A stretch of 64,000 nt of DNA. Origin: Paramoeba atlantica. Taxonomy: Eukaryota; Protista; Discosea. Shown here piece by piece: positions 4,208 through 53,874 of the stretch. The stretch's first letter is position 1. Every line of letters starts with the position of its first letter. Under the pieces are notes generated by a model. It was not told the origin of the DNA, searched no databases, and saw only the letters and a program-made list of their open reading frames with translations. Location of the stretch: NCBI GenBank assembly GCA_977017575.1, contig CDRNVI010000033.1:62001-126000 (forward strand), read 5' to 3'. The position numbers and the translations under genes are program-made.

Positions 4208-4223
4208 GTAGTAGTAGTAGTAG

Positions 4224-7117: not shown

Positions 7118-7325
7118 TTAGAATAGATTCTATTCTTTTTCCGAGCATCCTAGAGTTCAATATGTATTGTTAGAAAAAACAATCGTAACCCTACGAACAC
7201 TCCCATTACCCTACTGAGCTCTGTTCCTTTTTTCCTCTCCTCCACATCTCTCAACACCTCAAAAATAATAATACACTAGCGACCTTTCTATTTCCTTCCC
7301 TTCCCCTCCCCCTTTCCCCCCTCCC

Positions 7326-8330
7326 ATGGACGTCAAAATCCTCGCCTCGCGGCCGGACTACCTCGAGTTCGCGCTCCACCACGTCGACAACTCCCTGGCC
7401 AACGCGCTGCGCCGGGTCATGATCTCCGAGGTCCCGATGCTCGCGATCGATGAGGTCACGATCCGGTCCAACACCAGCGTGATCCACGACGAGATGCTGG
7501 CCCACCGGCTCGGGATGGTCCCGATCTGGTCCGCGGCCGCCCCCCAGATGAACCTCGCGTGGGGGTGCCCCTGTGAGGGGGGCGTCGGGTGTACCCGGTG
7601 CACCGTGGAGATGGAGCTCGCGGTACGGTGCCGTGTCGGGGAGCTCTCCCGCGCGGTGACGGCCTCGGATCTCCGCGTGACCCCGGGGCCGCTGGCGGAG
7701 CAAGTTTACCCGGTGAAAGGGACCCATAACGAGGGGAAAGGGGTGTGGTTGTGTACCCTGGGTCCGGGACAGGAGGTTAACCTGCGGTGTGTGGTGCGTA
7801 AAGGGATTGCAAAGGAACATGCGAAGTGGATGCCGGTGGCGACGGTGGGGATGCAGTATGAGTCGGAGATTACGTTGCATGAGGAGGCGCTGGGGAGGCT
7901 CTCGCTGGCGGAGAGGAAGGCGTTTCCAAAGGTTTGCCCTGTGGGGGTGTTTGCGTATGATGAATTTCATGATGAGATTGTGGTAGAAAACGCGGACAAG
8001 TGTATCTTTTGTCAGGATTGCGTCCAGCCGGAGGGATCAAAGGAGGAACTGGTGACGGTTCGGTACAAATCCCCGTCGTTGAACAAATACAATTACGTTT
8101 TCCGTGTGGAGGGTATAGGTGTGTTGCCCATGGAATATATCTTGCGGACCGCAGTGGAAGTGCTAGTCAATAAACTTACTACTTTTAAAGATTCATTATC
8201 TGGAGAAAAGGAAGCGAAAAAGGTGAGCAAAGGTGAGGATATTCAAAATGCACCAGAAAAGAATGATGGGGGGCCCTTTGCAAGTGAGACGCCACCAGAT
8301 ACAGGTTTGATGAGTGTAGCCTGGGTATAA
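7326..8330 (+). CDS. RPB3: RNA polymerase II subunit RPB3 (alpha-like)
   Basis: SLANALRRVMISEVP, NTSVIHDEMLAHRLG, CPCxxxxxCxxC zinc loop, KGIAKEHAKW. Confidence 0.88.
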   Translation: MDVKILASRPDYLEFALHHVDNSLANALRRVMISEVPMLAIDEVTIRSNTSVIHDEMLAHRLGMVPIWSAAAPQMNLAWGCPCEGGVGCTRCTVEMELAVRCRVGELSRAVTASDLRVTPGPLAEQVYPVKGTHNEGKGVWLCTLGPGQEVNLRCVVRKGIAKEHAKWMPVATVGMQYESEITLHEEALGRLSLAERKAFPKVCPVGVFAYDEFHDEIVVENADKCIFCQDCVQPEGSKEELVTVRYKSPSLNKYNYVFRVEGIGVLPMEYILRTAVEVLVNKLTTFKDSLSGEKEAKKVSKGEDIQNAPEKNDGGPFASETPPDTGLMSVAWV

Positions 8331-8495
8331 TTTCCCTGTTCTATTGTGTTGCCCACCTTTCTGAGGGTTGTAATTCATAAAACACAAGAAACGAAGAATA
8401 TTTTTTTGCTTAAGAATCTATTTTATAAAGGATACTGTTTACACAAGTCCTTGTGTCTGCTTTGATTTCAATTCATATTTCTTAGTTAAACCGAT

Positions 8496-10700
8496 ATGAC
8501 GAGCATACAGGTCGCGATTAGATTACGGCCGCTTCTGTCAGGAGAGTCCGGTGCGAATAACATGGAATATCACAGTGAAACAAAGAGAATATTATTCGGG
8601 CCGAAAACGTTTGATTGTGATCATCTGCTCAGCCCTGACTATAGCCAAGATAAAGTATTTCAGCAGTGTTGCCGTCCTACTCTAGATTCCATTCGCGATG
8701 GCTCGCAGGGTACGATTATGGTTTATGGGCAAACAGGAACAGGTAAAACACATACGATTTTCGGATCTGATCCGAAGAAAATGGATGGAATATTTTTTCT
8801 CTGCGTTTCACATCTCTTAGAGCGAATTCAAGACAGTCCATCGACGTTGTCTGTGTCTGTGGTTGAGGTGTACATGGAAAAAGTAACTGATTTGCAGACT
8901 GGGAAAGAGATTCCTGTATATCACGGAGCTGCACGAAATTTGACATGGTCCATAATATGTTCATTGCAACAATCCGCAGATATTATTTTTGGTGCGCTGC
9001 GAAGCCGTCATGTTGCCAGCACGTCAATGAATGAGAGAAGCAGCCGAAGTCACGTAATCGTAAACATGAAAATTTTGCGTCGGAAGAGCGTTGAGGTGTC
9101 CGACGAAGACTTGGCCGACGAAGCTGAGATTACGCTAAATGAATCGCATCTTGCCTTAGTTGATCTAGCAGGCTCAGAGTGTGTGGGTAAAAGCAAAGCG
9201 CAAGGGAAGACCATGCAAGAGGCGTCTTCGATAAATCGCAGCTTACTGGCATTGAAGAAAATCATACTGGACCTCTCATCTCCGAATCCTCCTTCGCACA
9301 TATCTTATCGGGATTCGAAACTGACCGAGCTCTTGCAGGACTCAATAGGCGGTTTTAGTCGGACCCTACTAATAGCTTGTGTATCCTCTAGCTCTAGGGA
9401 TATTGAAGAAACGAAATCTACCCTGGAATATGCCACAAAGGCACGCTTAATTAAGAATTTGGTTAATTCCGAGAAAGAGAAATTGCAACTAAAGATCAAA
9501 GGCCTGCAATATGAATTGCAGAAAGCAAAAAACAAGCTTGAAATTCAAGCGAATGAACGAGGACACGTCGTTATCACAAAGTCGGAGTACGACGACCTTT
9601 TACGAAGAGGCAGTCGTATCGAGGAGCTGGAAGAAGCACTAAAAGATGCACTTCAAAGTGCGGAGAAACGATTGAATGTTGTAGAATTTAACCAAGGTCT
9701 TATGAAAAAACTTCGTGAATCATTGAGACTAAAGGACGAAGAAATCAGCAATTTACACGCTCGCGTTAGCGGTGTAGAACATCGTCTTTTACCGCTATTC
9801 GAGAATTGCACTAATAGATTGGAGAACCTTCTTTGTGAGGAAGCGGATGCCGTGAATGAAAAAGTTGCTCAAATGCACTCTTCATACATTTCACACGCTC
9901 CTGAACTTTCCCCACAATGGGATTTGCTTGAAACCAAATTTTCTTCCGTGCTTGCAGAATTTCGCGACAACATAAACGAGCAGTTTACTGATATTCGGAA
10001 CACTGTGCAAGGCGTAATCAAGGCAGCTCCCTCAGCTGTTGACGTACAGGAATACAGAGACATTATCCCGGAACTACGGCGTAGTGCTGAGCGAACTTTA
10101 GAATTACTTAGTACTGTTGATAAGCGGGGAGATATGCTTCATGCTGTAACAAATGAAATGCAACAATATGCGGAAACATCGCATTCACATATTTTAGCCT
10201 CTCAGGCGGCTATTCGAGAAGATCGCTCGGAGAGAATATTGGTTCCTTGCGTACGAAAAATGCTGAAGGACTGCCAAGACGAATATTTCGCTCACGTGAA
10301 CCAAGATTCGTTGAAACTTCAAGAAAGGGAATTTTCATTTACTGGCCTGCGAGAGACTATGCATGAATTTCATGCACAAGCTGTGGAAATAACTAATGAA
10401 GAATGTAATCCAGAGAAACGTGCCCGGTTACCTCATGGCTCAGCAAGAGACACGACAAGTAGCTCCCGTTCCACCCTGCGTCGGGACATTTACGCGCGAG
10501 AAACAGACAGCCAAAAAGGATGCTCAGTAAAGGAGTCGCGAGCAGCTAGCGTGCAGCCGAGCAGCTCTGTAACAAATACCGAACACACCACTCCAAGGGC
10601 CGCGAGTGCATCCTATGAGCTGCCTAGCCTAAAAGACAAATCGTGGAATAGAAAGCGACCACTTACCAACGCTACGAATAAGACTGTACTCAAAAAATGA
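8496..10700 (+). CDS. N-terminal-motor kinesin with coiled-coil stalk (possibly kinesin-5-like)
   Basis: GQTGTGKT P-loop, NERSSRSH, DLAGSE, ISYRDSKLT, EETKSTLEYA. Confidence 0.93.
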   Translation: MTSIQVAIRLRPLLSGESGANNMEYHSETKRILFGPKTFDCDHLLSPDYSQDKVFQQCCRPTLDSIRDGSQGTIMVYGQTGTGKTHTIFGSDPKKMDGIFFLCVSHLLERIQDSPSTLSVSVVEVYMEKVTDLQTGKEIPVYHGAARNLTWSIICSLQQSADIIFGALRSRHVASTSMNERSSRSHVIVNMKILRRKSVEVSDEDLADEAEITLNESHLALVDLAGSECVGKSKAQGKTMQEASSINRSLLALKKIILDLSSPNPPSHISYRDSKLTELLQDSIGGFSRTLLIACVSSSSRDIEETKSTLEYATKARLIKNLVNSEKEKLQLKIKGLQYELQKAKNKLEIQANERGHVVITKSEYDDLLRRGSRIEELEEALKDALQSAEKRLNVVEFNQGLMKKLRESLRLKDEEISNLHARVSGVEHRLLPLFENCTNRLENLLCEEADAVNEKVAQMHSSYISHAPELSPQWDLLETKFSSVLAEFRDNINEQFTDIRNTVQGVIKAAPSAVDVQEYRDIIPELRRSAERTLELLSTVDKRGDMLHAVTNEMQQYAETSHSHILASQAAIREDRSERILVPCVRKMLKDCQDEYFAHVNQDSLKLQEREFSFTGLRETMHEFHAQAVEITNEECNPEKRARLPHGSARDTTSSSRSTLRRDIYARETDSQKGCSVKESRAASVQPSSSVTNTEHTTPRAASASYELPSLKDKSWNRKRPLTNATNKTVLKK

Positions 10701-11983
10701 GTAAGACGTCGCAAATATTTTCCTATGGGAACTGACTTCTCTACTCTGTATTTCATTCTCCTCGTTCTCCTTGTCTAGCATCATCATCGTATGACTTGCC
10801 TTAAGGTCTACTATAAAAATGAAAAAGTGTTCCTTTCGGATTAAATGTTTTACACTCTGTATGCGCCAGATGGTATTCTTTTAGACATACAAGCGCACCA
10901 CTTTACCTGTATCAAGGACCCTTCATCACCTACCCTACATCCCTCCGAAACTAAAACCATCTCCTTTTTCTTTTTACCCACCTCATCTTCAAACCTCATA
11001 AAATTAGCCTCAGGGGTCCGAATAACTATAAAACTTTATTATAGGTACTTTAAAGTAACTATATAATTTTTCCCTACCTTTATCTACCTATATTTTTTTG
11101 TCAATGATTTGCACTGGAATCGTACTATTTTATTGAAATTTTTCAATGCCTGGGCTCTCGGGTAATACAGAAAGTCGAGCTAAATTTGTCCAGCGTTATT
11201 AGCAATAAGGCCTTGTACTACTTACAAGGAGGTGGAGGCCGGAAAACAATTTCTGAATGTCGGCTCTGTAGTTCAAAAGCGGAACTTTGTTTGCGAAAAA
11301 GGCACTCGGACCTCGTACTCTTCAGCCCTGAGTCATAGTGAAGGAGAAGCGAGTCAGAAAGCGGAAGACGGAAAATGCTGTTGAAAGTGCAAATTTATGT
11401 CAAGTCCTATAAACCTTTCAAAGGTGTTCGAAACCATGATATAATGGAAGTGTGATCATGGAGTATGAAACGCGGCCATTCAGGATCCATTGTAGCAGAC
11501 ACTGGCTATTCCCATAGTAGAACAACATGTTCAATATGCGTCTTGTGTTCTGGAAATGCTACAATCTGGAGTCAAGTGGTAGTGGAAATTTTAGAAGCAG
11601 AAACATTGATAACATTGTTCAACAATGTAATCGTTGATATCGCATGGCTTATCAACGCCGATCAGAGAAGGCCTGGTGGAAGTGTTTTCCACGTCTGATG
11701 CTGATGAAGCTTGTTCGGCACTATAACTGCCTGAAAACTATACCTGTGCAAGATTGTTTCCTAAGTAGGTAATCAGAAAAATCATTCCCTCCAACAAGGC
11801 CTACTCTCCGCGACCCGAGCACCCAGACTGCACAGATTCCCCACCCAAATGGCACAAAGAGTCGACCGCTAAAATTATAGGTACATAAAACTTTAAAGGT
11901 AGTATAGGTACTTTATAGTATCTTTATTTCTTTTTTTCCTAAAAACAGCCTAAAACAACTCTACCCCATCTTCTCTATCCTCG

Positions 11984-12754
11984 ATGAAACCCCAGCAACA
12001 CCAACAAAACCCCCCTCCCCCACCCCCCTCCCCCACCTTTCCCTCCCCCTCCCCCACCGTCTACGACCTCACGCACGACCTCCACGCCTCCCACCCCGTC
12101 TGGCCGGGCCGTCTCCCGCTCCGCCGCACCCGCGACACCTCCGTCCCCACCGAGGGCTACGCCACCGAGCACTACACCCTCGGCGGGGACTGCGGCACCC
12201 ACGTCGACGCCCCCGCCCACTTCTTCCCCCACCTCCCCCCCCTCGACCGCATCCCCCCCCACCGCCTTGTCGCCCCCTTGGTCGTGGTGGACGTCGCGGA
12301 GAGGTGTCGCGGGGACCCGACCTACGGGCTGGGGGTACGCGACATAGCGGAGTGGGAGGGGAGGTACGGGGGGATCCCGCACGGGGCGCTGGTGTGTATG
12401 CGCTCCGGGTTTGATGAGAGGTTTGAGAAGGGGGGGGGGAGGGGGGAGGGGGGGGGAGATGAGTATTGTAACGCCATGAGGTTTCCGGGGTGGAGTGCGG
12501 AAGCGGCGAGGTATTTGGTGGAACGTGGGGAGGGGGATTCGATTGTGGGTATTGGGGTGGATACGTTGTCCACGGATGTGGGTACGGATGAGAGTTTTCC
12601 GGTGCATAACATTGTACTGGGCGCGGGATTGTATCAGGTGGAGAATTTAAACTTGCGTAATGTTCCGGTCGTGGGGTGCACGGTGGTTGTGGCTCCATTG
12701 CGGATTCGTGGCGCCCCAGAATCCCCGGCGAGGGTGATCGCGTTTTACAGGTGA
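11984..12754 (+). CDS. cyclase family metal-dependent hydrolase (kynurenine formamidase-like)
   Basis: GTHVDAPAH, GIGVDTLSTD, HNIVLGAG...QVENL, PLRIRGAPESPARVIA. Confidence 0.88.
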   Translation: MKPQQHQQNPPPPPPSPTFPSPSPTVYDLTHDLHASHPVWPGRLPLRRTRDTSVPTEGYATEHYTLGGDCGTHVDAPAHFFPHLPPLDRIPPHRLVAPLVVVDVAERCRGDPTYGLGVRDIAEWEGRYGGIPHGALVCMRSGFDERFEKGGGRGEGGGDEYCNAMRFPGWSAEAARYLVERGEGDSIVGIGVDTLSTDVGTDESFPVHNIVLGAGLYQVENLNLRNVPVVGCTVVVAPLRIRGAPESPARVIAFYR

Positions 12755-12968
12755 GTCCTGTTGAGCTTATGAGGCCTACAGTAGTAGTGCTCGCTAAGGT
12801 CCAAAACAAGGCAAATGTCCTCTTAACCTTCCATCCCCACCTTTTAATAGTCCTATACAGTATTTTGCTTTTGACTGATATTCGGTTAGGTAATGCACGA
12901 TTGTAGTAATTTGTTTTTGTTTTTCGAATAGGAAACTTTCGTGAAAAGACTTGTTCTATCTATGAAAA

Positions 12969-13748
12969 ATGCATAGAGCAACTGGACAACGGCTTTGCTC
13001 ACTTCAATCAGCGCAGATGTTTAGTGTCCCACGTTGGGCGCCACGGAAAACGTACTCCGTCAACCTGAGTAATTATTTAAATGGATTGTACTGCTATCCG
13101 ATAGATAGTTTTTTGCAACGACACGCGAAAGCCACGTCCGAGGAGAATATTTTGTGGCGCACCAAGTTTTTGGTTGTGAAGGACTCCAAAGTGCATGGAG
13201 TATATCAACCGCCGTGTGCTCACCCCCTTCCGGTTTCGTTTGCTCCTGAAGGTATTGCCCTAGAGGATTACAAAAATTTTGTTGCCGCACACGACGGAAA
13301 CGTTTTCGTACTTATTGCCAGTCGTCTCACCATTATGTGTGGTTTTTTGCGTCACGATGGCACCTGGGCAAAAAGGCCCTGGATCCACCCTATTGATTCC
13401 GTCTCCCGCGCGAACAGAATGCGAACCACTCGAAACTCTTCCGCGTTTCGTGAGATGTGCAACTTCTTTAACGCGCACACAGCAGAGATCGAGGCCGCGG
13501 CAACGCTGTACTTCCGTGTCTCCCCCGAGCACATAGTGTTAAATCCCACTTCGGAGCACTGCAAACGACAAGCCATGGTTGAGCACCACTCCGCGGTGAT
13601 TTGGGGGGACCAGTTGGAGAATAACCAAACGATCCCCTTTGGGGCCGATCCCAGGTGGGCGCCCCTCCCCTCTTGCGGGTGGGAGCAGCTGTTTCACACG
13701 GACGGGGTGCTACGTTTCATGAACAATGGCATTGTAGAGGTCGCGTAG
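12969..13748 (+). CDS. hypothetical protein, possibly mitochondrial
   Basis: 259 aa ORF co-oriented with the cluster; Arg/Ser-rich, acid-free N-terminus. Confidence 0.7.
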   Translation: MHRATGQRLCSLQSAQMFSVPRWAPRKTYSVNLSNYLNGLYCYPIDSFLQRHAKATSEENILWRTKFLVVKDSKVHGVYQPPCAHPLPVSFAPEGIALEDYKNFVAAHDGNVFVLIASRLTIMCGFLRHDGTWAKRPWIHPIDSVSRANRMRTTRNSSAFREMCNFFNAHTAEIEAAATLYFRVSPEHIVLNPTSEHCKRQAMVEHHSAVIWGDQLENNQTIPFGADPRWAPLPSCGWEQLFHTDGVLRFMNNGIVEVA

Positions 13749-14087
13749 GTCGTGAGAGGGTTTAACGGGGTGATCATTCTACCAGTCTACTACTGTTTCT
13801 CTGCGTTCGAAAATGCACTGGTTTTTTCTCGTATTGTTCACTTTTTGTGCTCTCGACTTGGAGCGATTACATTTCTGGGGAATAGTGGACAGTAACAAAA
13901 TAACAAAAATTAACGAAAAGAGTTTTGAAGAAGACTGTAGGTCCACGTTCAACGCATCTGGAATCTTAAAGCATAACTGTAACCTTATCATACATGTATT
14001 CAATATTCTAGTTCACTGTCGTGTACCTCTTTTAATATGTGCATGCATATGACGTAAATCATATTTCCCATATTCTAAAGCGCTTTA

Positions 14088-15542: not shown

Positions 15543-15669
15543 CAACAAGTAACAGAACTTTTAAACTTTGTTTGATTTCACGCCATTAGCCCCCTTCACC
15601 CTCAAACAACGTTCTGTTTGTCACTTAGCAAAAATCAGATTAATTTTAACTTTTCTCCTGTGTATCGAT

Positions 15670-17523
15670 ATGTCGATCAGCTCCTTCGGCCGCGTGCTTT
15701 CAAAATTAAAAAAGGAACATGGAGGACAACCCCCACCCCCTCGTGACAAACAACACCCCCCTATTCCTCCCCATTTACTTTCCCACCCCGGAACCGGTCA
15801 TGACCCGTACGACTCCCATCCTCCCCCGCACCCCCCGTCCTACCGCATGGACGCCCACTCTCGTGAGTCCCACCCCCCACCCTACCCCTACCCCACCCAC
15901 GAGTCCTACAATCCCGGTCACTGGCCAAACCACGAACGACCTCGAGAGTCTCCCATCGACCCCCGGAGTTACCCGCCCTCACTACAATCCTACGGGCCGC
16001 CTCGGCCGTCTATTGGAGAAGACATCCTGCCGGAGGTCCCGTTAGGAACTTCGTTCTCCCATCTCGGGGCTCCGATGACCAGCTCTCCGACGACAAGCTC
16101 CTCTCTCGGCAGCCATCTTGACGGTTTCGGGTCCTCAAGAGCCCGTTCTCCTCGACTACAGGGAGCTCTCCCCTCCTCGATCCCAGCCATCCCTTCCCCG
16201 TCTTCGTCTTCTGTTCCTTCGCCTGTGGACACAACCAATGCAGGGATTGAGGTCACACTACAAAAAGCAACCCCCCAGGACCCCCTGGGGCTAAACTTAA
16301 ATGAGAATTTAGTGGTCGTGGGGATCCACGAGAACTCGGTAGCCTATCGAGCGCACGTCCCGCTGCGTCATCGTGTGGTGCTGGTCAATGGGCAGCTGGT
16401 GAGTAATTTGGACCAGTTCCGACATGCCCTGGCCACCGACGGTAGTGGGTTGGACATTAAACTAAGGCTATCGCCCACGGTGCTGCGTAGTCAGTTGAAC
16501 CAGGAGCTACTGGATAAAGTCGTGGCGAGGATAATTTCTGGGGAGGAGATTGATTTAGAGGCACTGAAGGCTAACGTGCGGTATGAGTTTCTCCATGAGG
16601 CAAGTCCGTTTCACAGTGCCTTTACACGTCGGTTAGAGGCAGCGCGCAGGGTGATGAAATATTTGGATGATTTCGAGGTTTCGTTGGAAGAAACGGACGA
16701 GTTTGAGGCAGCGAAAGAATGCACCGATGAGGAGCTAGACGCCGCGCTGAAGTGGCTTGATACATTTGATCCTCCGAAAACTACGTCCGGTGAAGACGCT
16801 GCCCCCTCTACAGGGTCGGCGAGTATTCCTAGTGAGTGGATCTCTGAAACAGGACTTGGTATTGCTGAGAAAGGTCCGTATGGAAATGAGGTGGGTGGGA
16901 ATTTGCCCACGCCCTCGGCCTCCGAAGGACTTCCTTCTCATCCGGTGGCTGTTGTAGTGAACGCACCGATGGCAGAGCTCCCGCCCAGCGCCCCCGTAGC
17001 GAACGCCCTGGCATCTGTGAATGATGCAGCCATGCCTGCGATCGATAAAACGACGGAACTGACATCACAGACTGGCGGCATCGAGGCACTTAGAACCTTA
17101 CCAGGGAATAAAATAACATCTCTTGCGGAACTTAGTGAGGAGGAAAACTCGGAGGATAATGTGATCATAAATAAGGCACCCCAACCCCCAACCGCGACTC
17201 CCGTGTCCCGCGGCTCACACCGCGAGGGAGAAAAAGGAAAGGATATCACCGAAGATCGTGAAAAGATAAGAAGAGACAAACGAAAAGAGCGTGCCGGTTA
17301 TCAAGAAAATAAGGCTGTTGAAGATCGCTATGCTGCGCGCCGAGCCCGTCACGAGTCCCCTTACCGCAGTCGGTCCCGTTCTCGATCAAGAAAATACAAA
17401 AGGAAGTCTGCTGAAAGGGATAGACGATCGGATCGTGTGCACAGGAAAAGTCCACGACGCACAGAAAGATCGCCGGACAGAAGAGACCGTGAAACAAGAT
17501 CTCGGCGCACAGGTAGGAGATGA
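15670..17523 (+). CDS. Pro-rich / PDZ-like / SURP-like / RS-tail protein
   Basis: PLGLNL...VVLVNG (PDZ-like); LDKVVARI...YEFLHEASPFH (SURP-like); RSRSRSR tail; start moved to ATG 15670. Confidence 0.75.
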   Translation: MSISSFGRVLSKLKKEHGGQPPPPRDKQHPPIPPHLLSHPGTGHDPYDSHPPPHPPSYRMDAHSRESHPPPYPYPTHESYNPGHWPNHERPRESPIDPRSYPPSLQSYGPPRPSIGEDILPEVPLGTSFSHLGAPMTSSPTTSSSLGSHLDGFGSSRARSPRLQGALPSSIPAIPSPSSSSVPSPVDTTNAGIEVTLQKATPQDPLGLNLNENLVVVGIHENSVAYRAHVPLRHRVVLVNGQLVSNLDQFRHALATDGSGLDIKLRLSPTVLRSQLNQELLDKVVARIISGEEIDLEALKANVRYEFLHEASPFHSAFTRRLEAARRVMKYLDDFEVSLEETDEFEAAKECTDEELDAALKWLDTFDPPKTTSGEDAAPSTGSASIPSEWISETGLGIAEKGPYGNEVGGNLPTPSASEGLPSHPVAVVVNAPMAELPPSAPVANALASVNDAAMPAIDKTTELTSQTGGIEALRTLPGNKITSLAELSEEENSEDNVIINKAPQPPTATPVSRGSHREGEKGKDITEDREKIRRDKRKERAGYQENKAVEDRYAARRARHESPYRSRSRSRSRKYKRKSAERDRRSDRVHRKSPRRTERSPDRRDRETRSRRTGRR

Positions 17524-37520: not shown

Positions 37521-38867
37521 ATGAATGAAGCGGCGGTAGTAACAAAAAAGAAGCAGGTGCGACGGGATAGAGGTCAGCAACTACAAGTGCGTAGCTGGGA
37601 TGAGTTGGGTACCGCAGAACTTGAGGAAAAGCTGGGTGAAATGGAACGGCAACGACAAAGGGCGGCGGAGGCGGAAGCGGAGGCGGATGCGATCGCAGAA
37701 GAAAACTCCGCGCGTGTTGTGCGCTTCGGAACCAAGCTGAGTGACAAGCTCCCCGCTCTTAATGAAACAGAGGTGTTCGTAGGAAACCTTCCATATAGTG
37801 CCACCACTCGAACTGTCCGGGCCCTCTTCCCGGGCGCCAGGTACGTAAATTTACTCTACGACGACCAGGGAAAGATGAAGGGATTTGGCTACATTGATTT
37901 TCACACCGTCAAGGACGCGGAAAACGCCTTAAAACAGCACTTGAAGCTTCAGATGGGTCAGCGTACTCTTAAAGTCGAGCGTCGTGTAGCCAGCGACGAT
38001 GACCACGACGCACGAAAATCCTCCTCCGGAAAATCTCGCAAAGCCCCTCCGCTGGGACTCTACAGTCTGAAGCAAGGCGCCGTTTCGTTTGACTCCGGGG
38101 AGTTAACCCCTCAAGGGATGCTTTCCCGGGCCGGGGGAGACGACCGCATGCCTTCCACTGCGGGCCCCTTCTCTCGTACGCTCTTTGGCAGTCGTGAGCA
38201 AGTCGATCTCGCACCCCCTCGTGCGGAGATTCGTTTCGGTGCCTCCGTGCAGAGTGCCGTACCCCCGGCTCGTACCCCAGGCGCGATGTTATCCCGTGAC
38301 ACGTTTGCCACAGCCGAGGGTCCCCCGACCGGACGCCTTCCTGCTGCCTTCTCCCGGGACGATTTTGGGAGCAAAGATGTGTCCCCGGAGGTGTCCCGCT
38401 CCGGGCGGGATTCCCCGCAGCCGATGCGGCTCGGGGGTACGGTGATTCGCCCACAGCCTCCACGACGACAAGGGAGTCAGGAGACCAAAGGGACACCCGG
38501 GGCCTCTGCAGGGTTCTCCCGTGAGGCGTTTGGTTCAATGCAGAGCTCCGGGGATCCGAGTGCGGCGCAGAATAAACGTGAAACCGCTGCAGACAGGTTG
38601 AATGAAAGGAATTTTGAGAATAACAATACATCAAAGGAGAGTGAAAAACAGCATCGAGGAACCGTGGGAAAAATTATAACTAAGGTTCGTGATGTTTTTC
38701 GCAGTAATACATCCGAGAGAAAAAACTATTCAGAAGAATTAAATGAACCCAACCAGAAAAGCATGACAAACGTCGACGCGACATTCCACAAGGCGATGAC
38801 CAAACAGTTTGATACTGTTAGCTTGCACCCCCGTTCAAAGGAGAATCCGGATACGGAAGGCGTTTAG
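37521..38867 (+). CDS. RRM protein with repetitive low-complexity tail (eIF4B-like architecture)
   Basis: VFVGNLPY (RNP2), KGFGYIDF (RNP1); repeated FSRxxFG motifs. Confidence 0.8.
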   Translation: MNEAAVVTKKKQVRRDRGQQLQVRSWDELGTAELEEKLGEMERQRQRAAEAEAEADAIAEENSARVVRFGTKLSDKLPALNETEVFVGNLPYSATTRTVRALFPGARYVNLLYDDQGKMKGFGYIDFHTVKDAENALKQHLKLQMGQRTLKVERRVASDDDHDARKSSSGKSRKAPPLGLYSLKQGAVSFDSGELTPQGMLSRAGGDDRMPSTAGPFSRTLFGSREQVDLAPPRAEIRFGASVQSAVPPARTPGAMLSRDTFATAEGPPTGRLPAAFSRDDFGSKDVSPEVSRSGRDSPQPMRLGGTVIRPQPPRRQGSQETKGTPGASAGFSREAFGSMQSSGDPSAAQNKRETAADRLNERNFENNNTSKESEKQHRGTVGKIITKVRDVFRSNTSERKNYSEELNEPNQKSMTNVDATFHKAMTKQFDTVSLHPRSKENPDTEGV

Positions 38868-42670: not shown

Positions 42671-43183
<513 letters not shown>

Positions 43184-43542
43184 CTATGGGCGAAATTGAC
43201 ATGGCGTAATTATTTCGAATTACTAAGAAAGTATTGAACTCGATTCACTAATATGGAATTAATAATTTTTGGAAGTGTAAACCTGCATCTGAAGTGAAAT
43301 ATGCTCTGAAAAGAGTGCATTTTTGATATGTTTCACAATGGTGAAGGGACGGATGTATTGAGCGTCAGACTCCCCTCAAAGTCGAAAATTTTGTATTGCT
43401 ATATGGAAAATCTAGTCTCGTAATGTAGGGGCATTATTGGTATCATTTGTTGGACAACAAACTCCTGCCCACTACACATTTTTTATACACAGTCAAATTT
43501 CATTGAGTTTCTTTCTATTACCGTCAATAAGTTGGTACCCCA

Positions 43543-44769
43543 ATGACCGAAGAAGTTAAAAATGGAGATTGGAAACAAGGACTACGAGCCCCCGAAAAGG
43601 ACACTCGTATTAAAACCGATGATGTTCGTTCCAGGCAGCAACTTACCTTTGAAGACTACCAACTCAAGCGCGAGCTTTTAATGGGAATATTTGAAAAGGG
43701 ATTCGAACGTCCTTCTCCCATCCAAGAGGAAGCGATTCCTGCCGCCATCTCCGGCAAAGATATTATGGCTCGCGCGAAGAACGGAACCGGAAAGACAGCC
43801 TCTTTCATTATCCCCGCCTTAGAAAAGGTAAACGTGAAGAACCACAAGATTCAAGTTCTTATACTCGTCCCCACACGGGAACTGGCACTGCAGACGGCTC
43901 AGGTGACCAAGGAGCTCGGTAAGCACATGGAGGTGAACGTCATGACCAGCACCGGAGGTACTTCCCTACGTGGTGACATCCAACGTTTGTTTAACCCCCC
44001 TCACATCCTAGTAGCCACCCCAGGCCGAATCTTCGACTTGGCTTCGAAAAACGTAGCTAACTTGTCTAGTTGTCACATGGTGATTTTAGACGAGGCAGAC
44101 AAACTGTTGTCCTCCGAGATGATGGAATTGGTGGACAAGGTGATTCGGTACGCGATCCCGAAACGACAGTTGCTAATGTTTTCTGCAACCTTTCCTGTCG
44201 CAGTCAAGTCTTTCTGTCACAGTCACTTGCGCAAAGCGCATGTGATCAATCTAATGGATGAACTAACCCTCATCGGGGTATCGCAATTCTACGCTTATGT
44301 AGAGGAAAAGCAAAAGATTCACTGCTTGAACACGCTGTTCACACGATTACAAATCAACCAATCCATCATCTTTTGCAACAGTGTAAATCGTGTAGAGTTG
44401 CTTGCGAAAAAAATTACGGCGCTAGGGTATTCTTGCTACTATATTCACGCTCGGATGCCCCAGGAACACCGTAATCGTGTTTTTCATGACTTCCGCCAAG
44501 GTTTGTGCCGGAACCTTGTGTGCTCGGATCTCATTACCCGTGGTATTGATATTCAGGCAGTGAATGTGGTGGTTAATTTCGATTTTCCTAGGGCCGCTGA
44601 GACTTATCTTCATCGTATCGGTAGAAGTGGCCGTTTTGGTCATCTGGGGTTGGCCATTAATTTTATAACAAAAGAAGATCGTGAGTCGGTAGTATGCATT
44701 GAGAAGGAGCTCGACACAGTAATAAAATCCATGCCAAAGGAGATTAGCCTTGACTTGTATGCAAAATAA
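43543..44769 (+). CDS. DHH1: DEAD-box helicase DHH1/DDX6
   Basis: [58 protein letters not shown]. Confidence 0.97.
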
Positions 44770-47240: not shown

Positions 47241-48476
47241 ATGATAACCGCTTCCGTAAAATCACGTACAAAGCCTGAGTCACCAGAAACTCAGGCTGGG
47301 TGTCTTGGCACGCACAAAGATACTTACCAAACGTTTGTTCCCGAAAGAGTGCTTGGACAAGGTTGCTTTGGGACGGTCTACCTTGCCCGGATTTGTCACG
47401 GACCATATTGGGAGCACAAAGGTTCTATTTCTGGTACATGCGGCACATTGCCACCTGCAGTAACACTTGCACGTAACACAAATACAAATTCGAAAACTTT
47501 TGTTGAGAATTCTACATGCTCTCACGTCGCGATAAAAAAAGTGCTGCAGGACAGAAGATACAAAAACAGAGAGCTGCAGCTCATGCTACGAGTTAGTCAC
47601 CCGAATTTTGTTTCCTTACATCAGTACTATTACACGAGGGAAGAGAAATCCGAGGAGGTATATCTCAATTTGGTTTTAGAGTTTGTACCCGAGACGATAC
47701 AGCATTTCTACAAAAGCTACTTGCGCTCAAGGCAACTTGTACCAGATCTGTATCTGAGATTATTCTCCTACCAACTCTTACGCGCCATGCTTTACTTGCA
47801 TTCTCCAGAGGTAAATATTTGTCATCGCGATGTGAAGCCACATAATGTTTTGGTTAATCCAACCACTGGTGAGCTTAAATTATGTGACTTGGGAAGTGCA
47901 AAACAACTTGATGCTCAAGAGCCTAATGTGGCGTATATCTGCTCTCGATATTACAGAGCTCCGGAGCTTATTCTGGGTGCAACGCAGTACACCACGGCGG
48001 TAGACTTATGGTCTGTGGGATGTGTGATCGCAGAGCTCGTACTAAGAAGACCATTGTTTATGGGTGATAATAGCGAATCACAATTTGTTGAAATAGTTAA
48101 AATTCTTGGTCTTCCTACCGCACACGAGCTTAAAGCAATGGGTGCAAGCAATGGTATATCTTCAATGCATATTTTGATGAACGGAATGCGTAAAAAGGGA
48201 GTGTGTGGTGCAAAGTCTTCGTGGCGTGAACTGTTCCCCCCTCACATCTCAAGCGACCTGGTAGATTTAATAGCTCGTCTGCTACTCTACTCACCAAGTC
48301 ATCGTATTCTACCTGCCGATGCCCTTTGCCTTCAGGTATTCGATGGACTTCGGAATTCCTCATCAAATTTGCCCTCTGGCATTCCCATCCCTTCACTTTC
48401 TAATTTTCAAATAGAAGAAATACGGTGTATGAGCGAAGCTCATCTGAGAAAGTTGGTGGTACGACCCCCACAATAA
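47241..48476 (+). CDS. GSK3: glycogen synthase kinase 3
   Basis: VAIKKVLQDRRYKNRELQ, HRDVKPHN, AYICSRYYRAPEL; start moved to ATG 47241. Confidence 0.94.
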   Translation: MITASVKSRTKPESPETQAGCLGTHKDTYQTFVPERVLGQGCFGTVYLARICHGPYWEHKGSISGTCGTLPPAVTLARNTNTNSKTFVENSTCSHVAIKKVLQDRRYKNRELQLMLRVSHPNFVSLHQYYYTREEKSEEVYLNLVLEFVPETIQHFYKSYLRSRQLVPDLYLRLFSYQLLRAMLYLHSPEVNICHRDVKPHNVLVNPTTGELKLCDLGSAKQLDAQEPNVAYICSRYYRAPELILGATQYTTAVDLWSVGCVIAELVLRRPLFMGDNSESQFVEIVKILGLPTAHELKAMGASNGISSMHILMNGMRKKGVCGAKSSWRELFPPHISSDLVDLIARLLLYSPSHRILPADALCLQVFDGLRNSSSNLPSGIPIPSLSNFQIEEIRCMSEAHLRKLVVRPPQ

Positions 48477-48645
48477 AATTAGAAAGTCTTGTATTACTAG
48501 TATGTACATAGCCAAATGATTTTCTATACGCGTCTCGACGCAGCGTATTAATAAATTGGAAGGATCTAAAAATCCATGTCAAAACATTCAAGTAATCGCT
48601 TGAGTATTTTAGAGAAATCATTTTTGAAGGCCACATTTCTTTTAG

Positions 48646-50076
48646 ATGGAAGAGTCACACACTGCGATAGCAGAGATGCAGGAGAAATTACAAACACTCC
48701 AAGCAAGTTTTCTTCCATCTCCTCAGCAATTATTCGCTCTGAAGCGGTATATGATGGCTGAGATGGATACTGGTTTACGTGGTTCAAGTTCTCTTGCAAT
48801 GCTACCTACTTTTATAGAAAAACCGAATCAACGAAGAAGCGTTTCTCCTGGAATCTATTACGCTGTAGATCTTGGTGGTACTCATTGTCGTGTCTTGTGT
48901 TTAGCCCAGTGGAGTCACCGAAAGAAATGCCTTTTGCAGCAATCCCGTATAGTGCCCGATGCTGTAAAGAAAGGATCCTTGAACGCCTTGTTTGACTTCG
49001 TAGTCGAATGCGTGGCTACAGCTGAGTCTCTATCCACCAACGATTCTATATCACGAAGCAATTCTTGCCGCATCCCACTTGCCTTTACTTTTTCATTTCC
49101 TGTAAAACAAACCGGATTGTGCAGTGGTACTCTTCTGCGGTGGACGAAGGGTTACGCCATTTCGGATGGGAATCAGCGAGATATTGTTGAGTGCTTGCGA
49201 GAGGCACTGATAAGGAAAGGGTTACACCACTTTCATGTGGTTGCACTATGTAATGACACAGTCGGCACCCTCCTTTCACAAGAATTTTACGGACATGAAG
49301 CTGATATTGGTTGTATATTGGGTACAGGAACGAATTCGTGCTATTGGAGGAAATCTTATAACACTTCAAGTGACTCGGACAAGGAAGATGAGACAGATCT
49401 TCGCTTAACGGCCACGAACATTGAGTGGGGTAATCTTGGCAGTGGACAAAAAAATACACCGCTTCCAGATACTTCTTACGATCGCACTTTAGATCAAAAC
49501 AGCACGAATCCTGGCGAGCAGAGATTCGAGAAATTGATTTCTGGGAGGTACCTGGGTGAAACTTCACGACTCATACTTCTGGACATACTTCCTCTTCATA
49601 GTCACTCTCGTAAGTTGCTCTCGAAAGTCAATGCCATAACATCTTCCACGATGAGCAGATTTATGAACAATTCTATCAAGATAAATGGAACCTCTGGTTT
49701 CGATATGACTGATTCAAGTGAAACTCGAATTTTTAAAACTGTTTTCAAAATTGTGAGAAATCGCTCAGCACTGCTTGTTGCCGGGGCATTGTCTGCACTA
49801 GTAGACGTGATCATCAAGGAAAGAAACATTTCCAGAGAAATACGAATTGCAGTAGATGGTGGCTTATTTGAGTGCATGCCTCAATACCGAAAGATTCTTA
49901 CCCTAGGTCTACAGCAGTTATGTGGTTTGTACAGTGCAAAAATTATACATGTCAAACAAGGCAGTGGGTTGGGCGCTCTCTGGCTAGCCACTCATGGAGA
50001 AATCAAGAAGAGACCATCTGCTTGTCACACCGAAAAGGAAGCTCAGATAGTTGGTACTAGTGTATCCAAATTATAA
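48646..50076 (+). CDS. HK: hexokinase with C-terminal PTS1 (-SKL)
   Basis: DLGGT, FTFSFP, RWTKG, NDTVGT, GTGTN, NIEWG, FEKLISGRYLGE; ends VSKL*. Confidence 0.93.
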   Translation: MEESHTAIAEMQEKLQTLQASFLPSPQQLFALKRYMMAEMDTGLRGSSSLAMLPTFIEKPNQRRSVSPGIYYAVDLGGTHCRVLCLAQWSHRKKCLLQQSRIVPDAVKKGSLNALFDFVVECVATAESLSTNDSISRSNSCRIPLAFTFSFPVKQTGLCSGTLLRWTKGYAISDGNQRDIVECLREALIRKGLHHFHVVALCNDTVGTLLSQEFYGHEADIGCILGTGTNSCYWRKSYNTSSDSDKEDETDLRLTATNIEWGNLGSGQKNTPLPDTSYDRTLDQNSTNPGEQRFEKLISGRYLGETSRLILLDILPLHSHSRKLLSKVNAITSSTMSRFMNNSIKINGTSGFDMTDSSETRIFKTVFKIVRNRSALLVAGALSALVDVIIKERNISREIRIAVDGGLFECMPQYRKILTLGLQQLCGLYSAKIIHVKQGSGLGALWLATHGEIKKRPSACHTEKEAQIVGTSVSKL

Positions 50077-50138
50077 GCACATTTCTGAAAACTGAGAAAG
50101 TGCTTTTGTATTGCTATTTGCGTTTACGACCTACCGTT

Positions 50139-50446
50139 TACCGTGCACCCCCAGTAAGAGAATGGGTTTTGGGTCAAAATGGTCAAATCTCTCTTACTGG
50201 GGGGGATGCTTTTTTGGACAGTTTTCTCCCAACTTTTCTCCCAACTTTTTTTTGTGAAAACGTGTTAAAGCATTTAGCGGCCACATTTAAAATGTGGGTT
50301 ACCCCCGAGGCCCCCAACATGCGGACACTCACCCCCTACTCCCTATACGCCTCCTATAGGGCTCCCGTGCCAAATCTCTCTCACCGGGGGTCTCTTACTC
50401 AGCTCGAAAAGGGCTGAGTCTCTCTTACTGGGAGGGGTCTACGGTA
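50139..50446. mobile_element. 304 bp TA-flanked MITE-like element, family A/B, just downstream of hexokinase
   Basis: TA-CCGTGCACCCCCAGTAAG...TTTTGGGTCAAAATGGTCAAATC...; right end TTACTGGGAGGGGTCTACGG-TA. Confidence 0.72.
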
Positions 50447-50685
50447 GTGATCCGAAAGATGTTGCAGCATACGGGAGAACGACAGGGTTAGTTATGCTAC
50501 ACCCAAGCCAAAAATTATTATCGTTAAAATTCATGGTACAAAAATTATTGTTTTTTAATTGAAAGTTGATTAGTTTCGACAATAATTAAAAACTCAATAG
50601 TATTAGTCGGCAGTGTATTTACATAGTAGTTATATTTAGAAAGCTACTTCTGGGCAAAGTCTTATTTTCTTATATTTTATTTTAG

Positions 50686-51330
50686 ATGCCTGTACCAACC
50701 AGTCTACAAACCTCTGAGTACGACTACCTGTTCAAAATCCTTTTGATAGGAGATAGTGGAGTCGGAAAAAGTTGCTTGTTATTGCGTTTCGCCGATGACA
50801 CCTACGCCGAGAGCTTTATCTCTACGATTGGGGTCGACTTCAAGATACGTACTGTTCGGATGGATGGAAAAACAATCAAACTGCAATTGTGGGACACTGC
50901 TGGACAGGAAAGGTTTCGCACCATCACGTCAAGTTATTATAGAGGAGCTCATGGTATTATTGTAGTATATGATGTCACTAACCGCGAAAGTTTCGAACAT
51001 GTAAAAGGGTGGCTTCATGAAATCTCTAAGCATGCCAGTGACAATGTGAATAAAATTCTCATCGGGAACAAATGCGATCTCGTGGGTCAAAGAAAAGTGG
51101 AAAAGGAAACTGCGCAACAGTTTGCAGATTCACTGAGTATACCTTTTATGGAGGCCTCTGCGAAAAAGGCTACGAATGTAGAGGAGGCATTTAACAAGAT
51201 GACAATGGAAATTAAGCGTCGTGTGACAGCACAAAGGGCGTCTACGGGACAAAGGTCCAGTGGAATACGTCTCAACCCTCCAGGAGCAAGAAACACAGTC
51301 AAGTCGAAAGGATGTTGCTCTATCATGTAG
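50686..51330 (+). CDS. RAB1: Rab1 GTPase
   Basis: [59 protein letters not shown]. Confidence 0.96.
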
Positions 51331-51629
51331 CATGTGCACAACATGTAGCTGTTGTGTAGCTTTTCATAGTTGTAGGCTCAAAAAATGGTTATCTGGAAGA
51401 ATTTTATGCAAACGTACTCTTTCAATCCTAATATCTCGTTCAACAAGTTGCTATTTTATACCTGTTTTGCTAATCGGATATGCATTTTTATAAGTATTAC
51501 GTATATTCACTCTTCACATTTGTCTTCAGACATCCTTCTACTCGGTCGTTTAGGGTGATTTATTTTTAAATTAATTCAAAATAGCCGTAAAGTACATCTC
51601 TGGGTAATGCACTGTCTTACGCCGCATCC

Positions 51630-52001
51630 ATGGACGAAAATGGGGACAGATTTTCGCCAACATTAGCGGACAGTTTTAGAAGTGGTCTGCCTTCCGCAAT
51701 TTTGCATGCATTTGCACCACTTTATGACTCTATCCCACATATTCAACGTCTTGTTGAGGCAGCACAGGATTGTGCTTTCTGGTTTTCAGATCCAACATAT
51801 TGTCGGGAGAAAGATGCCGCAGTTGTAAACGTATTTATGCAAGCAACGGAAGAATCTTTCCGGGTATGTCCTCAAGAAAGTAAAGAGCTTGCTCGGTGTT
51901 ATGAAAGCAAAGGAAATAAATCCTTAGAGTTATGTACACATGCTCGGCACAGTTGGATGAAATGCTTATACGACAAAGCGAATATCAATGTCTGGCGGTA
52001 G
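51630..52001 (+). CDS. CX9C (CHCH-type) protein resembling complex I subunit NDUFA8
   Basis: Three CX9C pairs; LPSAILHAFA, SDPTYC and CLYDKA align by eye to NDUFA8. Confidence 0.7.
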   Translation: MDENGDRFSPTLADSFRSGLPSAILHAFAPLYDSIPHIQRLVEAAQDCAFWFSDPTYCREKDAAVVNVFMQATEESFRVCPQESKELARCYESKGNKSLELCTHARHSWMKCLYDKANINVWR

Positions 52002-52330
52002 GAGAATTAAGCTTTCTTCTTTTTAAGTGGTCTTTTTCTTCAATTTCCAAAACGCTACCCTGATGGCAGTGTATGATTAGCTTTACTTCAGACTGCTTCG
52101 CAATGCCTTCCCTTCCGTAGCTTTAAGCTTTTTTAAGCTTTTTTGCTCATTTCTTCCTATTCGAGAGATCTCGTTCCATAAGCCTTTCAATCACACGAAA
52201 AAAAAATTACTTTTGTTTTATCTCAAAGTCAAATAAATTCAAATACTAGTAAATAATCAATCACTCATTCCAATTCTAAAATACTTCTATAGTGTTTTAC
52301 TAGCTCTCCTCGTACACCATCACTTGCAAA

Positions 52331-53629
52331 ATGAGCGTGTCGGAGGCTGTACAAATGGAAATTGAGGAGACCATTACCTGTCTAATGGTCCCTCAAGCCT
52401 TCTCACGACCCTCCGGACCCTTTGAACCCACCTCCACCCCCGACCTTGGGTCAAACCACCACCCCTACGTCGCCGCCGGCACCGCCGAAGGCCACGTCTA
52501 CATTGTCCGCAACCCCTCTCTCCACGACCCCTCCGCCCCATACGACGACACCACCCCCCGTACCCACGCCGAGCTCTCCCCCGAGCTCTCCTCCCCCACT
52601 CCCATCCCCGAACTCCTTGAATGTCACACCCTCCCCGGTTCCCCCGCCATCACCGCTGGATCCCTCATCCACACCCGTCCCGGCGCCACCCTCGTCGGTG
52701 ACAGCACCGGACACGTCCACCTCCTCCACCCCCTCCACACCCATGGCACCCCTTTACAAACCGTACGTATCATCCCCGACCACCACAATAACCACAACAA
52801 CAACAACAACAACCGTAACCCCATCGGTTCCTCTTTCTCTTCCTCTTCGTCTTCTCGTGCCTTCATCTCCCACATCACCACCTCCCTTCGCCACGGCCAC
52901 CTCACCGCGGTCACCGACAGCACCGGCACCACCCGGCTCTACGACACCCACACCATGACGCACCGCTCCACGCTCCCCGGGACCCACCCCGCGGGGGTTC
53001 TCGGCCTCGGGGACTACACCGTGCTCGCCCCCACCCCCTCCCCCTGCCTGCGGCTCTGGGACCTGCGGTTTGACAAAACCCACGTGCTGAGTTTCTGCAC
53101 GGAGGACGTGGTGAGTGTGGTGGGGGAGCCGGTGGGGGGGGCAGCGGGGGCCGGTGGGGGAGGGGGGGACCCCGGGAGCGGGGCGCTCCCCTTTGTGGCG
53201 TGTGGCACCGTGGGGGGACGGTGCTTCTCGTTAAGGGTGGGGGAGGGGGGGAGAGGGGGACGGGGAGAGGGGAGGGAGGGGGTACAAGCCTGGAATCGGT
53301 GTTTTGTGCCGTGTGATCGGGCACAGAGGGCAGATTTAACGAGTGTGGGGGTAACGGAGTGGGGTGCGGTGGTGACGGGGGATAGTGCGGGACAGTTGAG
53401 TGTGGTGGATGCGGCGACCGGGCGGTTTCTGTTGTTGGATCATCTAACGACGGGAAATGGCGCGTTCGAGGAGATTGATCCTAAGGCGTGTGCGGTTGTC
53501 GGGGGTCAAGGGATTGGGAATACCCACACCTATGTGTATGCCTATGTTCTGCGCAATGGTATGTCGTGGGTACGTTGGGCGAGGGGGAAAACGGAGTCGC
53601 GGCCGCCTTCCACAGCGTGGCATCCGTGA
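52331..53629 (+). CDS. WD40/beta-propeller protein
   Basis: Repeated xxG(D/T)xxGxVxxxD units, LRLWDLR. Confidence 0.75.
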   Translation: MSVSEAVQMEIEETITCLMVPQAFSRPSGPFEPTSTPDLGSNHHPYVAAGTAEGHVYIVRNPSLHDPSAPYDDTTPRTHAELSPELSSPTPIPELLECHTLPGSPAITAGSLIHTRPGATLVGDSTGHVHLLHPLHTHGTPLQTVRIIPDHHNNHNNNNNNRNPIGSSFSSSSSSRAFISHITTSLRHGHLTAVTDSTGTTRLYDTHTMTHRSTLPGTHPAGVLGLGDYTVLAPTPSPCLRLWDLRFDKTHVLSFCTEDVVSVVGEPVGGAAGAGGGGGDPGSGALPFVACGTVGGRCFSLRVGEGGRGGRGEGREGVQAWNRCFVPCDRAQRADLTSVGVTEWGAVVTGDSAGQLSVVDAATGRFLLLDHLTTGNGAFEEIDPKACAVVGGQGIGNTHTYVYAYVLRNGMSWVRWARGKTESRPPSTAWHP

Positions 53630-53874
53630 ATTTGTTTCTTGTGTAGGTTGTGTAATGGGTTTGTCGTTCGTGTACGTACGGTCACTTGCATTTAGGATAC
53701 TAACTACTAGTATCGTTTATGTATATTACATAGGATGGATCTTTTTTGGCCGTCGGAGGATAAATCGAAAGGTCTTCTTTTTTAACTCTTTGATTTCATT
53801 GTAAAAATTTGAAGAACGTCATATTTTTTTATTAGAATTCCAATATATTTTGTATATTCGTAAGCTCTTTAAAG

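Follow-up and report, generated by a model that had tools for sequence, protein, structure and literature searches.

Single-gene islands of C-then-G strand skew in a Perkinsela-like kinetoplastid genome

Kinetoplastid genes are co-transcribed and are separated from one another only as RNA, and they are therefore thought to lack any individual identity at the level of DNA. The stretch of 64,000 nucleotides analysed here (the window), in which the DNA carrying the islands described below is that of a Perkinsela-like kinetoplastid, raises the question of what could drive the composition of single genes in such a genome. An earlier note on this DNA had drawn attention to four clear loci (near 7.6, 12.3, 16.3 and 53.1 kb) and one weak locus (near 19.3 kb) at which a C-rich plus strand flips to G-rich inside coding sequence.

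These skew-flip islands are real. Synonymous codons were shuffled within each gene, preserving both the protein and the codon usage of that gene, and the switch from C to G at third codon positions was compared with this null. All four clear loci stood out, with z = 5.1 for RPB3, 9.7 for a cyclase gene, 4.6 for orf 15670 and 14.4 for orf 52331, where C/G counts at four-fold sites run 50/3, 45/5, 22/44 and 8/39 in successive quarters of the gene. As the switch survives this shuffle, the islands are not refuted by the condition that the earlier note had set, a loss of skew once amino-acid composition is controlled. The weak locus near 19.3 kb did not reach significance (shuffle p = 0.22).

In the window, the four clear islands occupy 7.2–8.0, 12.0–12.8, 15.75–17.0 and 52.4–53.7 kb, and two more strong C-then-G islands lie in 18.9 kb of upstream sequence. 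GC content at the four loci rises from ~0.42 to 0.6–0.76, while GC skew passes from ~−0.6 to ~+0.6 across a switch placed by a matched filter at 7556, 12278, 16211 and 53043. The C arms measure 300–650 nt and the G arms, which fade, 400–700 nt, so that an island is ~1 kb long; approximately one gene in eight is strongly affected, at a density of one island per 8–14 kb. The polarity was as consistent as first described, the matched-filter scan returning no G-then-C arrangement other than side lobes of the same islands.

Each of these features lies on the plus strand. Island 1 (7182–7953) falls in the RPB3 gene (7326–8330; Pfam RNA_pol_L and RNA_pol_A_bac), with a C arm (7182–7556) that takes in 144 nt 5′ of the ATG, a G arm (7557–7953) and a weak G tail reaching the stop codon. 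Island 2 (11999–12774; flip 12278) spans the entire gene (11984–12754) for a kynurenine-formamidase-like protein (Pfam Cyclase), in which the C-run yields a Pro-rich N-terminal extension and the G-run an eight-residue Gly-rich insertion. Island 3 (15751–16977; flip ~16211) covers the 5′ two-thirds of orf 15670–17523, with a weak G arm fading mid-gene, and island 4 (52390–53696; flip 53043) covers nearly all of orf 52331–53629, its G/T-rich tail extending 67 nt beyond the stop codon. Among the names first given to these hosts, RPB3 and cyclase are supported by Pfam, the PDZ assignment is sub-threshold (E = 0.019) and Pfam gives no support for a WD40 protein. Island centres are rich in GC and in CpG, and GC in island 1 peaks near its centre.

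A weaker island (37689–38609; flip ~38352; GC 0.61–0.67; z = 4.1) lies in an RRM-protein gene (37521–38867), and a weak C-to-G gradient (55779–57360; flip ~56527; z = 2.5, p = 0.004) runs through the whole of a PP2C gene (55801–57327). Both share the polarity of the strong islands. Further faint cases occur elsewhere, among them a C-then-G trend (43455–44653) in a DEAD-box helicase gene (43543–44769) that is not significant alone (p = 0.13).

Assembly chimerism and foreign DNA, which the earlier note had listed for checking, were both ruled out: window positions 1–12035 differ from an independent ENA assembly by 2 gaps and 0 mismatches, islands 1 and 2 are bridged by contigs of two runs that show 0–4 differences, and kinetoplastid orthologues stand in conserved order. 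Palindromes, foldbacks and a shared mobile element were likewise rejected, as local alignment scores between arms and between islands fell within block-shuffled nulls, with one pair of islands marginally exceeding the null maximum (19.5 vs 19.0).

Within each arm, it is a single base that gains. At four-fold sites, where the background is 0.19–0.20, C accounts for 0.61 in 5′ arms and G for 0.61 in 3′ arms; the three other bases are depleted in each arm. At two-fold sites in 5′ arms, C takes 0.88 of C/T positions (background 0.40), and G takes 0.42 of A/G positions, equal to its background of 0.42; in 3′ arms, G takes 0.75 of A/G positions and C takes 0.36 of C/T positions, at or below background. 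This two-fold-site rule was replicated on the two upstream islands (18.9 kb, L007), which had not been picked by the earlier note, and is seen more weakly in the faint islands. Codon positions 1 and 2 shift in the same sense, to 0.40 C in 5′ arms and 0.35 G in 3′ arms (background 0.22–0.23), and poly-Pro and poly-Gly runs are inserted into the proteins. The arms had been called C(A)-rich and G(T)-rich; the C and G part of that description holds, whereas the A and T part comes only from codon positions 1 and 2, both bases being depleted at four-fold sites (T in G arms, 0.09 vs background 0.32).

As the effect reaches four-fold and two-fold sites, positions that specify amino acids and short stretches of UTR alike, the observations support a pressure that acts on DNA rather than translational codon bias. 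Three claims of the earlier note are borne out here: that synonymous sites are hit, that protein runs are driven by the skew and that the process is not codon bias of the gene. GC-richness itself is a by-product of the single favoured base on each strand.

A rise of only one base per arm amounts to a one-base sink and rules out GC-biased gene conversion of the ordinary kind. Tracts left by that process resemble the islands in being local ~1-kb GC enrichments able to override codon preferences, but they raise G and C alike on either strand. This weighs on the suggestion that each island marks a recurrent hotspot of double-strand breakage or recombination, shaped by GC-biased gene conversion or by error-prone resynthesis after resection. 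The ~1-kb GC-rich tracts and the GC peak near the centre of island 1 would suit such a hotspot, the published Perkinsela genome retains SPO11, DMC1 and HOP1 (PMC5601477), and a resynthesised strand heading away from a break would be G-rich if the polymerase over-inserted G. However, the symmetric weak-to-strong form of the idea fails at two-fold sites, where the other strong base shows no rise; C insertion on a damaged, retained 3′ overhang would give the opposite polarity; and a hotspot leaves the gene-bounded sawtooth geometry described next unexplained. We regard break hotspots as highly improbable.

Each of the six strong islands examined is contained in one gene and none crosses an intergenic region; for the four in the window, random placement reproduces such confinement with p ~4e-3. 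In five of these islands the onset is no more than 150 nt from a start codon (p ~8e-4 for the four in the window), the left edges of islands 1–4 standing at −144, +15, +81 and +59 nt from the ATG, and where an island fills its gene the right edge lies +20 or +67 nt from the stop codon. The exception, upstream island L007:3955-4966, begins 646 nt into its ORF and has its anchor at the gene 3′ end. Spill into flanking non-coding DNA, as claimed earlier, does exist but is short, at most ~150 nt. Flips lie 230–712 nt inside coding sequences, and the profile around them is a directional sawtooth—a step-like onset of C, a plateau, an abrupt flip and a decaying tail of G—for which gene direction and chromosome direction coincide, all genes examined being on one strand. 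Islands in longer genes fade gradually mid-gene. Twenty-five plain genes of the window are flat in third-position skew, whether aligned on the ATG or on the stop codon; there is thus no general 5′-to-3′ gradient and the effect is limited to a subset of genes. These results give no support to the proposal that the process is strand-symmetric about a central point irrespective of genes, given that confinement is complete, that most islands start near an ATG and that the sawtooth is no mirror image.

The same geometry tells against replication initiation sites whose arms would carry leading- and lagging-strand mutational asymmetry. The skew does jump upwards with the outward strand G-rich, as at a bacterial or human origin, and C-insertion bypass on an exposed lagging-strand template would give the correct sign. 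Against this, skew returns to ~0 within 0.4–0.7 kb of the flip, cumulative skew is flat over 64 kb with no long-range V, the islands are bounded by genes, and mapped origins in Trypanosoma brucei are intergenic with the opposite G4 polarity (PMC13179062). Origin footprints, the first idea put forward for this locus, are consequently a poor fit, the skew dying within 1 kb and T. brucei origins looking different, and we hold them to be very unlikely.

Of the window's 11 canonical G4 motifs, ten fall within islands and are carried by the strand that leads away from the flip. The polarity is right for the putative G4/R-loop elements that had also been suggested. Selection for G4 motifs, or for G runs arising by slippage, was rejected, as 91 runs were found where local composition predicts 88.9 ± 6.5.

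An internal bidirectional Pol II initiation element, with the flip as start zone and the G-rich strand of each arm as non-template, would draw on this G4 placement and on the GC- and CpG-rich centres. Its polarity also matches T. brucei, where G/T-rich 10-mers on the coding strand of start regions drive directional transcription, and the islands share with the GT-rich elements of those regions long G runs and a G-rich strand oriented along transcription (Wedel et al., 2017, PMC5579346). Human CpG-island promoters, too, are ~1 kb long, bidirectionally transcribed and GC-skewed, and mammalian promoters of this class resemble the islands in GC- and CpG-richness, in strong strand skew and in a G-rich non-template strand prone to R-loops and G4s (PMC4617957). 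Both likenesses have limits. T. brucei start regions are intergenic, several kilobases long and T-rich too, whereas the islands are intragenic, ~1 kb and depleted of T at free sites; in mammalian promoters transcription starts at or near the change of skew, whereas here the flip lies hundreds of nucleotides inside coding sequence and any starts are putative. Initiation elements would also sit awkwardly with the avoidance of intergenic regions, with a sawtooth that lacks mirror symmetry, with one island per 8–14 kb (far denser than known kinetoplastid transcription units) and with the lack of any excess of G runs or G4 motifs over local composition. We judge this explanation unlikely.

Comparison with a relative indicates which state is older. 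At its syntenic kinase–RPB3–kinesin locus, the relative carries an RPB3 gene without an island, so the island is the derived state. Where the two RPB3 proteins share a conserved residue in the 3′ arm, the third base is G in 52 codons and A in 7 here, against G in 22 and A in 36 in the relative. The two genes are collinear, with no insertion at the island, and faster evolution of the protein inside it is not seen (24 derived residues here, 41 in the sister lineage). More distant kinesin relatives (L003, L004) were dropped as outgroups, as they are not syntenic and so could not polarise changes.

Selection on the mRNA, for which C-richness in the 5′ half and G-richness in the 3′ half would aid the structure, stability, localisation or translation of particular transcripts, could account for edges that fall at the probable ends of the mature mRNA, with short 5′ and 3′ UTR spill and never beyond. 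It accords less well with the unrelated functions of the island genes, with altered amino acids and inserted poly-Pro and poly-Gly runs, with arms no more complementary than composition predicts, with mid-gene fading in longer genes, or with a relative whose RPB3 orthologue manages without an island. Such selection seems to us very unlikely.

The closest known pattern comes from fungi, the only group in which gene-confined bias of this kind has so far been described, and then in much milder form. Fungal genes have C-biased 5′ ends and G-biased 3′ ends on the coding strand, an effect attributed to transcription that reaches four-fold sites, amino-acid usage and, slightly, UTRs, as here (McLean & Tirosh, 2011, PMC3315797; see also PMC555766, 2005). 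Fungal skew is a weak average over most genes that leaves GC unraised. The islands, in contrast, are discrete (~1/8 genes), near-saturated (favoured base ~0.6–0.7 at four-fold sites) and abrupt in both edges and flip, with GC rising from 0.42 to 0.7 and plain genes lacking a gradient; moreover, unlike fungal genes, kinetoplastid host genes do not form transcription units of their own. Neither the Perkinsela genome paper (PMC5601477) nor its supplements mention skew or GC islands, and our literature search found no paper linking Perkinsela with GC skew.

Our preferred reading, which we put forward tentatively and at somewhat less than an even chance, is that a strand-specific mutation pressure, originating in this lineage and restricted to individual genes, has left the islands as its footprints, and that it is coupled to transcription or pre-mRNA processing, a coupling suggested by geometry alone. 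It would be an extreme, all-or-none form of the 5′-C/3′-G skew of unicellular fungi. What the data show is that unconstrained coding-strand sites are all driven to C, starting at a sharp edge that mostly sits at the gene 5′ end, and then, past an abrupt switch, all to G, before the drive fades out. One DNA strand may be left exposed or unrepaired while that gene is transcribed or its pre-mRNA processed, and Rev1-type insertion of C would carry synthesis past its lesions, turning any base on the damaged strand to G; the exposed strand would change from template to non-template part-way along the gene. G-rich strands are more prone to G4s and R-loops, so the process may reinforce itself, which could explain why islands are discrete. 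Two observations count against this mutation pressure, namely the island anchored at a gene 3′ end (L007:3955-4966) and plain genes without the metagene gradient seen in fungi, and we know of nothing that accounts for a strand switch inside a polycistronically transcribed gene.

Elements of this mutation pressure have precedents: opposite abasic sites Rev1/Pol zeta places C, and R-loops cause an increase in T>G that is specific to the non-transcribed strand (PMC6063437), while R-loops in T. brucei follow pre-mRNA processing sites between genes (PMC6294496). A more specific version, possible though on the unlikely side, is a mutational runaway that reinforces itself and has the transcript as its bounds: once G-rich enough, one strand of a gene segment would form G4s or R-loops, and C-insertion bypass would turn its remaining bases to G. 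Were this so, polycistronic kinetoplastid genes would undergo DNA-level events of their own—gene-specific initiation, antisense transcription or RNA-bounded hybrids—and the scars of those events could be read straight from sequence.

A pressure that is bounded by single genes, saturates silent sites and adds poly-Pro and poly-Gly to proteins implies a gene-level DNA process hitherto undescribed in kinetoplastids. To our knowledge, no cause of the fungal skew has won acceptance since 2011, and the islands offer an extreme, discrete model of it that should make a mutational mechanism far easier to pin down. In practical terms, such islands break short-read assemblies, distort gene calling and mask homology; orf 52331, for which no homologues and no Pfam WD40 domain were found, is an island gene lacking detectable relatives.

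Two minor observations concern the sequence data consulted: one ENA contig terminates in a C-run, and the only possible RNA run yielded two short contigs, both lying outside the GC-rich part of the island.

All of the roughly 40 genes in the window lie on the + strand, separated by short, pyrimidine-rich spacers, and the GC content is 0.436. Protein matches show kinetoplastid affinity; for the kinesin, the top hits that carry a name are trypanosomatid. Four public runs from one study hold the same DNA, as does contig ctg3793l of ENA assembly ERZ24900291. The 11040–11820 spacer, which separates the kinesin gene from the cyclase gene, is a dispersed multi-copy repeat, with a contig word depth of ~5–17 times that of its flanks in three runs and numerous variant short contigs terminating in unrelated sequence.

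The skew flip reported in the earlier note proved real at ~7.6, 12.3, 16.2 and 53.0 kb, where GC reaches 0.6–0.76 and GC skew runs from about −0.6 to +0.6. A matched filter placed the + strand flips between the C-rich 5′ arm and the G-rich 3′ arm at 7556 in island 1 (RPB3 gene, 7326–8330), 12278 in island 2 (cyclase gene, 11984–12754), 16211 in island 3 (orf 15670–17523) and 53043 in island 4 (orf 52331–53629); the only G-then-C signals in the window were side lobes of these islands. Synonymous codons were shuffled within each gene, preserving its protein and codon usage. The third-position C-then-G switch outlasted this control for amino-acid composition, which the earlier note had proposed as a way to refute the pattern (z = 5.1, 9.7, 4.6 and 14.4 for islands 1–4), and the opposite polarity was never significant in 36 genes. 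Four-fold sites carry C at 0.61 in 5′ arms and G at 0.61 in 3′ arms (0.19–0.20 in 25 plain genes), and codon positions 1 and 2 move in the same direction. The RRM gene (37521–38867) has a weaker island of the same polarity and strand, with its flip at 38352 (z = 4.1), as has the PP2C gene (55801–57327), with its flip at 56527 (z = 2.5); the weak locus suggested at 19.3 kb fell short of significance under the shuffle (p = 0.22). A metagene gradient is absent from the plain genes; the phenomenon is therefore discrete, trailing off into weak cases. The islands are a real, striking and lineage-specific feature of composition.

An assembly artefact was ruled out by matching contigs: the independently built ENA contig shows 0 mismatches and two single-run indels against window positions 1–12035, and contigs from two runs span islands 1 and 2 with 0–4 differences. 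That ENA contig (ERZ24900291:ctg3793l) terminates where island 2 begins, inside its C-run (~12010–12034), with a one-base homopolymer indel there, indicating that such tracts break short-read assemblies; the islands are points at which assemblies break and probably give rise to false frameshifts. Alignment rejected the arms as reverse complements of each other, and sequence sharing among islands does not exceed the expectation from composition.

The islands are bounded by genes. Relative to the start codons of islands 1–4, C sets in at −144, +15, +81 and +59 nt; in the gene-filling islands, G falls +20 and +67 nt relative to the stop codon. Under random placement, p is ~8e-4 for the proximity of left edges to start codons and ~4e-3 for containment in a single gene. 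The earlier note had described a strand-symmetric process centred on a point, but the profile has the form of a 5′-to-3′ sawtooth and lacks mirror symmetry: C rises as a step within 100 nt and then forms a plateau, the flip is abrupt, and G is maximal just past it, fading over several hundred nucleotides. Following the ENA contig for 18.9 kb beyond the upstream edge of the window yielded two further strong islands, both C-then-G. A 717-nt gene is filled by the first, from 60 nt ahead of the ATG to about the stop codon; the second covers the final 1 kb of a ~1.6-kb ORF and ends 52 nt past its stop codon, and is therefore gene-bounded yet 3′-anchored. The gene of one out-of-sample island (3309–4914 of this upstream sequence, L007) reads as two overlapping frames, 3309–4334 and 4096–4914, which shift within long C-runs, owing either to a homopolymer error in the assembly or to a genuine frameshift. 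The same upstream gene array, also unidirectional, includes an ORF (L007:12473–13111) that weakly matches the DDE_3 transposase.

Two-fold sites reveal pressure towards one base per arm and not GC enrichment. C/(C+T) is 0.88 in 5′ arms (n = 130; background 0.40), where G/(A+G) equals background (0.42, n = 36; background 0.42); G/(A+G) is 0.75 in 3′ arms (n = 138), where C/(C+T) is 0.36 (n = 149). Both ratios are elevated together only within ~150 nt of the flip, and both upstream islands obey the two-fold-site rule. The favoured base gains at four-fold sites from each of the others: A, T and whichever strong base (G or C) is disfavoured. Such a one-base sink excludes ordinary GC-biased gene conversion and needs a process converting any base to G on one strand, namely the template strand for the 5′ arm and the coding strand for the 3′ arm.

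The kinase–RPB3–kinesin order is kept in a relative's contig (L001; ENA ERZ25072283), which has no islands across its 12.6 kb. Its RPB3 shares 55% protein identity with that of the window and has a GC of 0.42–0.50 without skew; by this comparison, the RPB3 island is derived in the lineage of the window. Since RPB3 is collinear with its orthologue in alignment, the island is an in-place rewrite. Where the two proteins have a conserved residue, third-base counts for the 5′ arm are C 26, G 16, A 0 and T 1 here and A 9, C 12, G 9 and T 13 for the relative; the 3′-arm counts are G 52, C 26, T 24 and A 7 here and A 36, C 25, G 22 and T 26 for the relative. With ten further homologues used to polarise amino-acid changes, the RPB3 protein shows no acceleration within the island (derived residues: 24 here versus 41 in the sister lineage), so purifying selection holds in this essential gene. 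The cyclase has a Pro-rich N-terminal extension encoded by the C-run and an 8-residue Gly-rich insertion encoded by a G-run, the latter missing in Papus and bacterial homologues. The top homologue of this kynurenine-formamidase-like protein is a transcript of the free-living prokinetoplastid PhM_4 (52% identity), followed by best homologues that are all bacterial (40–46%); its ancestry may lie in an old gene transfer into prokinetoplastids. For orf 52331–53629, the largest island gene, the protein yielded neither a homologue at E ≤ 0.001 nor a Pfam domain; rewriting may have erased its detectable similarity.

The fungal 5′-C/3′-G gene bias also reaches four-fold sites, amino acids and UTRs, and has no accepted cause (McLean & Tirosh, 2011; PMC3315797); the start sites of plants and of fungi show C>G skew (PMC555766). 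Unlike fungal gene skew, the islands are discrete and nearly saturated, with a large coupled GC rise and a kinetoplastid host, and the Perkinsela genome paper and its supplements make no mention of skew or GC islands. They represent an extreme, gene-bounded variant of a known, still unexplained strand bias.

Divergent transcription, a replication origin or post-break resynthesis would each fit the polarity alone. Start regions in T. brucei have G/T-rich coding strands but are intergenic (PMC5579346), and its mapped origins are intergenic with a G4 arrangement opposite to that of the islands (PMC13179062). Gene confinement, sawtooth shape and the one-base sink together favour a process tied to that gene's transcript. 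Rev1/Pol zeta bypass abasic sites on an exposed strand by C insertion, which in yeast rises with transcription and, when R-loops accumulate, does so specifically on the non-transcribed strand (PMC6063437); this known chemistry could turn any base to G on one strand. The exposed strand might switch mid-gene through antisense transcription from the G arm, or through two polymerase states, as proposed for fungi. The commonest R-loops in T. brucei track pre-mRNA processing sites between genes (PMC6294496), so single-gene RNA/DNA events do happen in polycistronic genomes. G runs and G4 motifs show no excess over the expectation from composition, yet 10 of the 11 G4 motifs in the window fall inside islands, their strand polarity being the expected one. 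At 4301–4700, a short patch that is GC-rich and C-skewed gives way to one that is AT-rich and G-skewed, with one minus-strand G4 motif at 4402; this does not belong to the class of islands described here.
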